DNA of 64,000 nt, taken from NCBI GenBank assembly GCA_943704425.1, contig CALSCP010002175.1, forward strand, positions 62,674 to 126,673, given 5' to 3'. The notes below the pieces were generated by a model that made no database searches, had not been told where the DNA came from, and was given only the letters and a program-made list of their open reading frames with translations. A program made the translations under genes and the position numbers. This DNA comes from Ministeria vibrans ATCC 50519 (taxonomy: Eukaryota > Protista > Filasterea). The stretch's first letter is position 1; each line of letters starts with the position of its first letter. Positions 18,621 to 22,304 of the stretch are shown here, piece by piece.

Positions 18621-21600
18621 ATGGCGATGGTTCCACTTCTGTTTTTCGTCTGTTGCCTGTCCCTTGTCGGGAGCACATCCGCCAGTGCGTGGATGCAGCC
18701 GAGGAGCTTGCAGCTTTCCCAGGGCATCTGCGGCTCGTCAAGCTTCTTTTTTGACGATCAGATTTGCTTCGCTGGTGGAGGAACGCTTTGGTACAATGAC
18801 TTTGCTGATTCTCCAGCGGACCATTTCATATGGCTTACCAACGCGGTGTTGTGCCTCTCAACTGACAACGAATGGATTGATTACTCCGCGCCTGCGCTGC
18901 CATACAAAGCCGCACTGCACGCTACGCTGGCTTTCACCGCAAACACAGTGTGGGACTACGAATCCGTCCTCCTTGTCGGCGGTCGTGTCGGCTTTGGCCC
19001 CTCTAATACTGACAAAGCGTATATTCTCCAGGACTACGAGTGGACGGAAGTTGATCCGATGCCTCGCGGAGGAAGGGCGGGCCACTCTCTTGTGGGTCCC
19101 TTCTCAAACGGTGATGTGTACGTTGTGTGCGGTGGCGAGCAAGTGATCGAAATCTACAATACCTTGTCAAGCACTTGGCTCGATGGTCCCACCGTGCCCA
19201 ATACGCAATGTTTGTTTGCTGCTGCAGCAATGATTGAGTCAAAATTGGTTGTGGTTGGTGGTAGCGAAGAGAGCCCAAAGTCTGCGTGGGTTTGGGACGT
19301 TTCGTCGTCACAAGGCTCTAGCTCAGCTGCCTGGGTGAGGGGTGCTTCGCTACCCTGGCTGTTGTCGTCAGGCGCCTATATGAGCGGTGTTGCCGTTCTC
19401 TTCAACACTCGTATGTGCATTGTTGGCGGCGCTACTTACGCTGTTGGTGCACAAGTCGCTACGTCATCATCGGTCCTCTGCGGCACAGGCTTGCCAGGCT
19501 CCTCGTGGGAGTCGCTTCCATTGCTTCCAGAAGGCGTGCGCTACACAACAGCAGTACTGGCCTATTCGTCGCATGACATTTATCTTGCTTCCATTGGAGG
19601 CGTCGTGACAGAGCAGAACAATGCACTCTCAAGTGTGAATATTCTAGATGTGGATCAAATCCTGACATCGACATCGCTGTATTGTACTCTACCGTGTCAA
19701 AACGGAGGCTACTGTGCGCCAATGGATCCAGGATTGGGTCCAGCCTCCTTGCCGGATTTGGTGTGGGAAAACCAGTGCAAGTGTCCCTTTTCCTACACGG
19801 GAGCTCAGTGCGAGACCTTTGTCTCTCTCCCGCCTTGCGACCCCAGCACGTCTGCCGAGTGTGCAAATGGTGGATCGTGTGTGCTGACAAGCCCGACTAC
19901 CTTTGAATGCATTTGTCCCGCGACGTACACCGGCTACACCTGCGAATCATTGACCTCCAATGTCGACCCATGTGCTCTGAGTCCGTGCCGCAATGGCGGG
20001 TCATGCCTGAACGTGGCACATCTCTTCTTTTCTTGCCTGTGCCCGGTGGGGTTCGTCGGGGGGGAGTGTGAGACGTCCTTGAGCGCCCCTCCCCTTTCGA
20101 TGGCCATCTGCGATTCGTCGCCCTGTTTGAATGGGGGAACGTGCACCGTGGCCGAGGTCAACAGCACCATGGAAGAATGGAGATGCGAGTGCGACGCGGT
20201 CACGAGCGGATTCACCGGTAGTCGGTGTCAGCTCACGGTTGCAAGCGAATTGTGTGAATCAAGCCCATGCGCCAATGGAGGAACATGTGTGGGCGTTGAT
20301 GCTACAGAAAAAACTCGACGGACGTCTTCCGTGGATCCCGAGTGGATGTGCGTGTGCCTGAGCGGCTTCACCGGCGATCGTTGTTTGGTGCAAAATGGAT
20401 CCTGCTCGGCCACCGCCATTTCCTTGGGCGAAAAGTACTGTCGCAATGGTGGGTATTGTCAGGTGGCGCCAAATGGACACGTGGCGTGTGCGTGTCCCCA
20501 GGAGTTTAGCGGTGCGTATTGTGAGGTGCCGATCAATGCCACTCGGTGTGTCACCTCGCCCTGTCTCAATTCAGGACTGTGTCTGGCATTTAAGAATGGA
20601 CGTCACTTTTGTGAGTGCTATCCTGGCTATACCGGTACCACTTGCGAAACGCTCACAATATCGAGCTGCTTGTCGTCTCCTTGTCTCAATGGCGGCCTGT
20701 GCATTTCGTCACTGACTGCGTCGCTCGATGGGACTCCCGAATGGGCGTGTCGATGCCCAACGGGCTTTGTGGGAATCGACTGCTCCACCGTTCTGCTGCC
20801 CAGCGCATGTGATGCTCGTCCCTGTGAAAACGGGGGTATTTGCTCGGTGCAACAGCTCAACCAGTTTGTGTGCAGGTGTGGCATCGGTTTTACAGGCGAT
20901 AAGTGCCAGGTAAAACTGCCGACTTGTGCGTCATTGCCTTGCTTCAATGGAGGCACTTGCTTTTACAATGAACATGGTACGACCATGGTTTGCGCGTGCA
21001 GTGCACATTATACCGGAACCAGGTGCGAAACAGCTGACGAGGCAGCAACGCCCGAGTCGTTGGGTGCGTCGGGCCCGAATCATAGTACATTCATTGTGAT
21101 TGCCGTCTTGGTACTCTTGGCAACTCTCGCTCTTGTATTGGCGCTCACCTTTTACGTGTGGCGGCGGAGACGATCTAATCGGCAGGCGGCGCTACCCGAT
21201 CATCACAGTGACCTACGCGAGTACCTTATTGTTGATCATGGACAGGCAACGGGCGAATGTGATGACGACGCAACGTACACGATGGAGATGGAGGATTCAG
21301 GATCAATGGCGAGCCGGGTGCCCTCATCTTGGAAGAAATTACCCGCGGACGCATGTATGTCTAGTGGCTTTGATCAGGTGGATGTGACCGCGACGTTGGG
21401 TCGGTGCTTTGAAGAGCTTATGAATGGGACGGCTCGACCGCAGTCGCATGGCAGAGGACGCGACAGCCATGGCTTCAGCTTCCAACGGTTTGCCATTCAA
21501 AGGGTGTTTCACATTCAAAATTATTATCTCTGGGCGGACTACGATCGCGAGCGCGGACGCATTCGTGCTAAACTCCCGCGCGCCGTCGACAGGTCGTTCC

Positions 21601-21918
21601 TCGCCTCTCCCATTTTAACTTCAAACTTTAAAATTCCTGGCTCACCTCTCTCCGCAGACATTGGCGAGTACTTTTTCTTTCATGGAACAAAGGTAAAGTG
21701 CCCTTTGGTAAACTTGTTATTAACACTATTATGTTTAATAGTCGTCTCTTGCCCATACGATCAAAGCGACTGGATTTGATGATCGGGTGGCGAGCCAAAA
21801 GGGAATGTTTGGTGCTGGATGCTACTTTGCCGAATCGTACGTCTTCAATTATGATATTAATATAAGAAAAGAGTGTACAATGTCAAAACAAGATAGTATA
21901 CAAAACAAACAGCGATAC

Positions 21919-21969
<51 letters not shown>

Positions 21970-22304
21970 TATTATTAATACAAGTATAATAATAATAACT
22001 ATGACGTAATAACTGGCTGTTTAGAGCGTCGAAAAGCGATCAATACGTTCCCGCCAGAGACACAACCTTCTGCATGTTTGTGTGTCGAGTTGTCCTTGGA
22101 CGAGCAGTCACGACGAGTATGTCTGATTGCAATATGCGCCGACCACCCTGCATCGAGGGGCACATCCATGAACCGTGTGCGCACGAGCGCTACGACAGCC
22201 TCATTGCCGTCCCCGACGTTCTCAGCGCACGCTTTCGCGAGTTTATCGTCTTTGACCGGCGTCAGACATACCCTGAGTATTACCTCGAGTACAAGAGAGA
22301 ATAA
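18621..22304 (+). CDS. Single-pass transmembrane receptor-like PARP: signal peptide, Kelch repeats, 10 EGF-like repeats, TM helix, cytoplasmic PARP catalytic domain (H-Y-E)
   Basis: Exon 18621-21692 has a hydrophobic N-terminus, GG...W Kelch blades, ten C...PCxNGGxC...CxC...G..C units, TM FIVIAVLVLLATLALVLALTFYVW followed by RRRR, and IGEYFFFHGTK. Exon 21742-21836: GFDDRVASQKGMFGAGCYFAES. Exon 22025-22304: SKSDQY...MFVCRVVLG...YDSLIA...FREFIVFDRRQTYPEYYLEY*. Confidence 0.92.

Follow-up and report, generated by a model that had tools for sequence, protein, structure and literature searches.

Can a PARP domain serve as the cytosolic output of a single-pass receptor? The question is raised by a gene at positions 18621 to 22304 (+ strand) of a 64,000-nt stretch of DNA from the filasterean Ministeria vibrans ATCC 50519 (GenBank assembly GCA_943704425.1, contig CALSCP010002175.1, positions 62,674 to 126,673 of the forward strand); this whole stretch is called the window here, and coordinates given without a contig name refer to it. 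An earlier description made from the letters and open reading frames (ORFs), the sequence-only reading, had seen in the gene product a Kelch and ten-EGF ectodomain, one transmembrane (TM) helix and a PARP domain with an H-Y-E triad on the cytoplasmic side, and had held that the fusion was no guess about splicing. We find the architecture borne out by the sequence and the splicing borne out by RNA-type contigs: the gene is transcribed and spliced, contigs cross the EGF-TM-PARP boundaries, and independent DNA runs show that the fusion is not an assembly join. As to what the protein does, the answer we favour, with a probability of about 0.6, is that it would be a membrane-tethered ADP-ribosyltransferase controlled by engagement or clustering of its ectodomain.

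Gene structure and transcripts

The gene has three exons on the + strand and a coding sequence of 3,447 nt (1,148 codons and a stop) for a product of 1,148 aa. Exon 1 (18621-21692; 3,072 nt, 1,024 codons, ending in phase 0) encodes the whole ectodomain, the TM helix, a linker and the first half of the PARP domain, and it lies within a single + strand ORF (18621-21779, 1,052 codons), in agreement with the earlier claim that everything from the signal peptide through FHGT is held in one uninterrupted 3.07-kb exon. The ATG at 18621, with A at -3 and G at +4, is the first ATG of a 1,064-aa open frame that itself opens 12 codons past an in-frame stop. Exon 1 ends with ...FFFHGTK at 21692, directly before a GT donor (GTAAAG) at 21693, and is followed by a 49-nt GT..AG intron (intron 1, 21693-21741, AG at 21740-21741). 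Exon 2 (21742-21836, 95 nt) reads SSLAHTIKATGFDDRVASQKGMFGAGCYFAE and contains the GFDDR...GMFGAGCYFAE NAD-site motif with the triad tyrosine, Y1052, at 21823-21825. Intron 2 (21837-22024, 188 nt) has a GTACGT donor at 21837 and its AG at 22023-22024; a long (AAT)n/(ATT)n microsatellite occupies 21900-21990 within it. A serine codon (tc|a) is split across the junction of exons 2 and 3. Exon 3 (22025-22304) supplies the C-terminal half of the PARP domain, reading ASKSDQYV...FREFIVFDRRQTYPEYYLEYKRE and then the stop, with Y1063 in SKSDQY, a Cys/His cluster, E1128 at 22239-22241 and the TAA at 22302-22304.

Evidence on the transcript comes from contigs of four runs of one 2025 study, which are labelled as another organism and which we guessed to be RNA; these were compared with positions 18300-22600, skipping the repeat in intron 2 (21908-22006). 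The RNA-type contigs match at an identity of at least 99%, with two differences overall, at 21010 and 18746. They fall on exons only, with none in the 320 nt upstream, none in the 300 nt downstream and none running unspliced across either intron, a restriction that fits RNA and not DNA. One contig (run X20) joins 21690/92 to 21740/42, skipping the 49 nt of intron 1, and another (run X13) joins 21836 to 22025, skipping the 188 nt of intron 2; in both cases the skipped sequence is GT..AG and the joint is exactly the predicted one. Retention of intron 1, which the sequence-only reading had named as a threat to its model, was not seen, since the contig skips exactly 21693-21741 and no contig retains this intron. 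Coverage of exon 1 is patchy, RNA depth is low, and 50 nt within exon 2 have no contig.

Overlapping contigs nevertheless run from 20545 to 21764: they start at about the sixth EGF repeat, continue through the TM helix and linker into the PARP N-terminal half, and pass over the spliced intron 1. Because they cross the EGF/TM/PARP boundaries, the fusion is present in RNA. An assembly chimera can be rejected on the strength of these contigs together with two independent sets of DNA runs, from 2011 and 2022, each of which contains 0.99 of the sampled words of the stretch. Parts of the stretch are also present in seawater, algal-culture and biofilm metagenomes.

From ectodomain to catalytic domain

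The N-terminus resembles a signal peptide (residues 1-23, 18621-18689): hydropathy peaks at 2.09 at residue 1, and the segment ends ...STSASA, with small-residue ASA before W24. A Kyte-Doolittle scan of the ORF finds two hydrophobic segments only, this one (residues 1 to about 23) and the putative TM helix F824-W847 (peak 3.25), which is preceded by an acidic stretch and followed directly by an RRRR stop-transfer at residues 848-851 (helix and RRRR together, 21090-21173). An acidic linker predicted to be cytoplasmic (residues 852-899, 21174-21317) fills the interval between the helix and the start of homology to the PARP subfamily described below, and has no family match. At the level of sequence, then, the protein has a predicted signal peptide, one TM segment, a positive-inside charge pattern and a PARP domain C-terminal to the helix, as expected of a type I single-pass protein; the signal peptide and the positive-inside rule point to a topology in which the PARP domain would lie in the cytosol.

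The first ectodomain module is a Kelch-type beta-propeller of six blades (residues about 45-345, 18753-19655). When the first 360 aa were run separately, Kelch_6, Kelch_2 and Kelch_1 scored above the Pfam cut-offs, and the attractin/LZTR1 propeller model gave a sub-threshold match (7e-5, 22.6 bits against a cut-off of 50). The closest solved matches are Kelch propellers (5e-6), and six hydrophobic-GG blade motifs can be placed, one of them by eye; an AlphaFold2 model made with no alignment was unusable (mean pLDDT 38). The Kelch part is unique within the genome. It is followed by ten EGF repeats of the Notch/Delta type (C355-C802, 19683-21026), in which 60 cysteines form ten C6 units, as many repeats as the sequence-only reading had counted when it also pointed to the RRRR stop-transfer. 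Pfam EGF matches this array at 2e-40 over 9 stretches, the closest solved chains are DLL1 (8e-31) and Notch1 (2e-25), and a Pfam scan of exon 1 reports Kelch and EGF families only. The motif C-x-S-x-[PA]-C is found in 4 of the 10 repeats and C-x4-[ST]-C in 5 of the 10, which we take to be the O-glucose and O-fucose consensus, respectively, of Notch-type EGF repeats. None of the ten carries the calcium-binding prefix D/N-x-D/N-E/Q. EGF repeats are hugely expanded across the genome (6,638 first-look candidates), many of them in intron-free open frames of 2,000-6,500 aa.

Recognition of the PARP domain was less direct, because profile and homology searches were run per exon piece. Against PF00644, exon 3 alone aligns with profile positions 93-198 at 7e-6 and 26.1 bits, against a cut-off of 26.7, and Pfam finds no match to exon 2 alone or to the cytoplasmic part of exon 1 alone. 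A search of the PDB with the latter part alone returned chance matches only. In a whole-genome Pfam family search the exons of this gene were not listed, the pieces being individually too weak. Other comparisons were more informative. The N-terminal half (21318-21692), running from a P-S-S-W motif to FHGTK with the catalytic histidine H1021 at 21681-21683, was recognised by phmmer and by family alignment: among 1.84 billion representatives, an exhaustive phmmer search with the cytoplasmic part of exon 1 found 59 proteins of one PARP subfamily, the best at 4e-17 and 41% identity, and the query protein was not among them. Full-length members of this subfamily pass PF00644 at 34-78 bits. Exon 2 alone matches the tankyrase-2 NAD-site motif at 2e-3, and exon 3 matches PARP12 at 4e-4, an alignment that sets the REFIVF Glu against the PARP12 triad Ile. 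One family member, P0003, matches tankyrase-2 over the whole domain at 6e-14, and its Glu falls on the tankyrase catalytic Glu, with which E1128 is thereby aligned.

In a MAFFT alignment of 22 members of the subfamily, to which the three exon pieces were added as fragments, the pieces tile the PARP domain end to end, with no gap or overlap. FHGT, G-x-G-x-YFAE, SKSDQY, RRPPC-x-EGH...C-x-H-x-R-x-DS and FREF(I/V)V all stand in conserved columns, and the H-Y-E triad is in register (H1021 in FHGT, Y1052 in GCYFAE, E1128 in REFIVF), as is the S/Y of SKSDQY. The earlier claim that two further exons complete H-Y-E is thus confirmed by exons 21742-21836 and 22025-22304, which are colinear with the family. 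Because the exon pieces occupy conserved columns and P0003 matches tankyrase-2, we conclude that, as judged from its sequence, the PARP domain is a complete tankyrase-like H-Y-E domain (H1021, Y1052, E1128).

The Cys/His cluster RRPPC-x-EGH...C-x-H-x-R-x-DS follows the central RV.LG strand in nearly all members of the subfamily, and in this gene it lies in exon 3 at about 22140-22190. It may be a zinc site; its position presumably differs from that of the zinc site in the tankyrase structure.

Relatives of the catalytic domain

Paralogous domains of this PARP subtype number at least 12 in the assembly (29.7 Mb, 2,860 contigs), and in the paralogues examined the exon break after FHGT is at the same position. 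In 8 of 9 paralogue loci examined, a kinase domain lies directly upstream of the PARP domain (contigs C2759, C202, C2221, C2121, C915, C1131, C585 and C1392; loci L001-L004, L007-L009 and L011). Further upstream of the kinase there are leucine-rich repeats (LRR) at C2221 and eight armadillo (ARM) repeats at C1131. Loci L004, L005, L006 and L009 are near-identical recent copies. Two other genes of the subtype have strong hydrophobic segments before the PARP domain and no EGF or Kelch (L012, 2041-4254 on C2225, and L013, 2305-3594 on C1656, both - strand), which indicates, as far as sequence can tell, that membrane tethering of this PARP subtype recurs within the genome. The gene on C1877 is of the PARP1/2 type.

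The subtype is also found close by. The next gene on the same strand (24338-30208, +), 2 kb downstream, combines ZNFX1, AAA_11 and AAA_12 helicase pieces with a single-exon PARP domain of the same subtype (PF00644, 64 bits). Between the two lies a convergent gene (22732-24141, - strand), a single ORF of 469 aa with a long Ser/Gly/Arg-rich (RGG-like) N-terminus, for which Pfam gives no match at E<=1e-3.

Among the 59 public members of the subfamily, most are Ank- or RCC1-kinase-PARP proteins, one is a helicase-PARP (P0052) and five are membrane-anchored. The anchored proteins are varied: P0036 starts with a hydrophobic segment at its N-terminus, after which about 170 residues lie outside and one TM helix precedes the PARP domain; P0057 has one TM helix before PARP; P0011, from a Didymoeca costata transcriptome, has four TM helices; P0032 has several; and P0038 has many, together with four FN3 domains. 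The present protein resembles the membrane-anchored PARPs of its subtype in that PARP starts 10-60 residues after the TM helix, with the start PP.YW...RIEN..LW...FHG. A Kelch, EGF or recognised ligand-binding ectodomain is found in none of the five. The suggestion that the protein is unique therefore stands in part: no relative has a Kelch/EGF ectodomain, whereas the same subtype is membrane-anchored in P0036, P0057, P0011, P0032, P0038 and two genes of this genome. The tree of the PARP N-terminal half (131 columns) is poorly resolved, but P0036 and P0057 form a supported clade that excludes the Kelch-EGF-PARP protein, and membrane anchoring of the subtype therefore probably arose separately, more than once.

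The source names seen for subfamily members are those of two choanoflagellates only, both from transcriptomes. The subfamily is lineage-restricted, and its PARP domain appears to be a portable output module placed behind a sensor and kinase, a helicase or a membrane anchor. One member, P0016 (158 aa, from an ENA metagenome contig), has zero tree distance from the PARP N-terminal half of C585 (L008, 6673-7011), which shows that public metagenome assemblies include this organism or a strain almost identical to it, though the Kelch-EGF-PARP product is absent from protein libraries.

Searches for relatives of the whole protein gave little. A word-indexed protein search with residues 850-1024 and with the Kelch part (residues 30-350) returned no match at E<=1e-3 among proteins of 563-1,792 aa, shared words being needed for a match, and a scan of metagenome contigs with the exon 1 protein found no relative, a scan that may leave out records of this genome. 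The ESM Atlas yielded leads only: an 'EGF-like' cluster with Kelch and attractin-propeller matches, mostly from green algae (score 0.76), and PARP clusters (0.81-0.85).

Competing explanations and known systems

How might such a protein work? In the mechanism we favour, a cleavable signal peptide would put the six-bladed Kelch propeller and the ten-EGF stalk on the extracellular or luminal side, one helix with its positive-inside RRRR would span the membrane, and beyond a 48-residue acidic linker the tankyrase-like PARP domain would face the cytosol; compared with its relatives, the ectodomain would be the sensor and the kinase would be missing. Engagement or clustering of the ectodomain at the surface would then bring the cytosolic PARP domains together, and the clustered domains would modify themselves or nearby proteins with ADP-ribose, marks that could be read or removed by the products of reader/eraser genes clustered nearby. 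Tankyrase activity depends on polymerisation, and it is from this dependence that the idea of control by proximity is drawn. The sequence-only reading had already proposed signalling in the manner of a receptor kinase, with the propeller as the ligand-binding part on an EGF stalk, a proposal that stays conjectural. The parts of this working model do not deserve equal confidence. Its architecture is very probably correct, whereas true gating of the PARP domain by the ectodomain has, in our judgement, a little less than an even chance; catalytic activity and ligand gating are what we infer from the arrangement of the domains. More tentative, and with the odds against it, is the wider proposal of a new class of transmembrane receptor, a 'receptor ADP-ribosyltransferase' in which ectodomain binding or clustering would switch on the cytosolic PARP domain and ADP-ribose would replace phosphate as the signal; this might be one arm of a lineage-specific family in which a shared PARP output module is wired to kinases, to helicases and to membrane sensors and serves recognition between cells or innate defence.

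Several points weigh against the favoured explanation. Ligand binding, surface localisation and enzyme activity are all things that we infer, and an H-Y-E triad read from sequence would be no guarantee of activity or of poly-ADP-ribose formation. Every exon piece alone falls below the PF00644 gathering cut-off. Each splice junction is carried by one contig, with short sides of 25 and 22 nt, from runs guessed to be RNA. Our protein and metagenome-contig searches found no whole-length orthologue against which conservation of the architecture could be gauged. Because EGF arrays are extremely abundant in this genome, as the count of candidates given above illustrates, a chance, evolutionarily young fusion of little function is possible. 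Lastly, one RNA-type contig (run X13, depth 2.2) reads T7 at 18747-18752, just after the signal peptide, where the assembly has T6. A run of T7 would leave the upstream frame without an ATG and with a stop at 18617-18619; were this reading true, the remaining protein would stand in another frame than the ATG at 18621 and would lose the signal peptide. T7 may be a contig error or a strain allele. We favour T6, because with it a canonical signal peptide leads in frame into a cysteine-rich ectodomain, and because a difference seen in one contig only, at a depth below 5, may be a mistake. When metagenome contigs were scanned for the exact pattern across the homopolymer, no match was found; records of this genome may again be left out of such a scan.

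The T7 contig is the starting point for the view that the gene is non-functional or mis-modelled, either through a frameshift near its 5' end or because the PARP domain is a pseudo-enzyme, a view that could also draw on the low RNA depth and on the lack of an ATG in the T7 upstream frame. We regard it as highly improbable: the T6 signal peptide runs into a cysteine-rich ectodomain that needs secretion, an uninterrupted frame of 1,024 codons is hard to keep in a dead gene, the catalytic and NAD-site motifs are all intact, both introns are spliced, and the contradicting contig has a depth of only 2.2, at which its extra T may be an error. A Notch-like released effector, in which ligand binding would trigger juxtamembrane and intramembrane cleavage and the freed PARP domain would act elsewhere, for example in the nucleus, earns no more credence. 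The type I topology, the short linker, the resemblance of the EGF array to Delta and Notch and the O-glucose/O-fucose consensus motifs would all suit such a protein, but Pfam finds no LNR/NRR, no ankyrin/RAM region and no nuclear localisation signal.

A more serious competitor, which we still consider unlikely, is a constitutively tethered enzyme or adhesion protein, whose ectodomain would serve adhesion, matrix binding or targeting while the PARP domain acts locally regardless of occupancy, as PARP16 does at the ER. P0057, P0011, P0032, L012 and L013 have plain hydrophobic anchors and hardly any ectodomain, or none, which suggests that localisation alone is often the point, and this genome commonly builds proteins with EGF arrays. 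Against this, a propeller carried on ten EGF repeats, about 800 residues in all, is expensive for a mere anchor, and the PARP module in this subfamily is otherwise coupled to LRR, ARM, Ank, kinase and helicase domains. One could also envision a surface sensor of a conflict or immune system, in which the ectodomain would recognise a non-self surface, such as that of a virus, bacterium or grazer, and the PARP effector would modify targets or consume NAD within an ADP-ribosylation gene island of the window. Expansion of the subfamily in this lineage (at least 12 paralogues), the adjoining ZNFX1-type helicase-PARP gene and the modular sensor-effector fusions typical of immune families would fit; however, the Notch-type glycosylation motifs of the EGF repeats fit cell-cell or developmental signalling equally well. 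This reading, which we hold to be improbable, is in any case a special case of control by the ectodomain rather than a true alternative to it.

Kinase, phosphatase and guanylyl cyclase outputs are all known among single-pass receptor enzymes. If the cytosolic domain of this protein is active and responds to clustering, ADP-ribosylation would be added to the few chemistries that signal directly across membranes, and the protein would offer a simple model for proximity switching of tankyrase-like domains. In this gene a marine protist supplies a concrete candidate, expressed and intact, and named relatives of its PARP subtype come from choanoflagellates, the sister group of animals. PARP as a portable output module, following LRR-, ARM-, Ank- and RCC1-kinases, helicases and membrane anchors, would be relevant to the evolution of signalling and immune systems. 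Should the protein turn out to be only a tethered enzyme, it would still have a new architecture, of modest interest.

Several known systems share parts of this design. Tankyrases (TNKS1/2) have the same H-Y-E triad, the GFD-R...GMFGAG-YFAE-SSKS-QY NAD-site motif and the C-terminus ...E(F/Y)(I/V)V(Y/F)...YPEY(L)I.Y, and TNKS2 is the closest solved catalytic domain for the subfamily (through P0003 and exon 2 alone, at the values given above). The Kelch-EGF-PARP protein has, by Pfam on exon 1, neither ankyrin repeat clusters nor SAM, and instead has an ectodomain and TM helix on its N-terminal side; we therefore reject a tankyrase identity and call the protein tankyrase-like in its catalytic domain only. 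Among extracellular relatives, attractin and MEGF8 are likewise type I proteins that combine a Kelch propeller with EGF repeats, and the EGF array is most like those of DLL1 and Notch1. Here, however, Pfam finds no CUB, PSI, C-type lectin or laminin-EGF module of the attractin/MEGF8 kind and no LNR/NRR, ankyrin or DSL module of the Notch/Delta kind, and the cytoplasmic enzyme domain is one that those proteins lack; with the defining modules not found by Pfam, attractin, Notch and Delta identities are rejected.

Other ADP-ribosyltransferases are associated with membranes in different ways. The ecto-ADP-ribosyltransferases (ARTC) act at the cell surface with an R-S-E active site that faces outwards, and are GPI-anchored or secreted, whereas the enzyme described here has an H-Y-E site, predicted to be cytosolic; its position C-terminal to the TM helix and RRRR leads us to reject an ecto-ART identity. 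PARP16, whose catalytic domain faces the cytosol and which is not known to have a signal peptide or an ectodomain, is a PARP-family enzyme held at the membrane by one helix, as this protein would be. We reject a PARP16-type protein all the same, since here the TM helix comes before the catalytic domain, a predicted signal peptide opens the protein, about 800 residues form an ectodomain, and the C-terminal end, ...YLEYKRE, lacks a hydrophobic segment. We know of no receptor enzyme with an ADP-ribosylation output that has been characterised, and a phrase search of a paper library returned none. In PARP16 the transmembrane region is C-terminal and the catalytic domain belongs to Clade 6 (Perina 2014, PMC4245714), whereas the helix at residues 824-847 precedes a PARP domain of the tankyrase, Clade 3-4-like kind. 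The same survey lists, all without characterisation, a PARP12-like sponge protein whose TM helix is N-terminal and Clade 3 PARPs of Rhizaria that have TM domains (PMC4245714), and Citarelli 2010 makes no mention of transmembrane PARPs (PMC2964712). The view of the sequence-only reading that there is no characterised example agrees with the phrase search and with the standing of TM-PARPs as survey entries only in Perina 2014.

A parallel in topology is offered by receptor kinases and receptor guanylyl cyclases, which have the same order of signal peptide, modular ectodomain, one TM helix and cytoplasmic catalytic domain, an order predicted here from sequence. The protein would differ from these receptors in its ADP-ribosylation output and in having no kinase between the TM helix and PARP, and activation by dimerisation is assumed here. 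On these comparisons, a fair description would be a new domain architecture of a known enzyme family, in which a weaker, membrane-anchored form of the same theme already appears among uncharacterised sequences.

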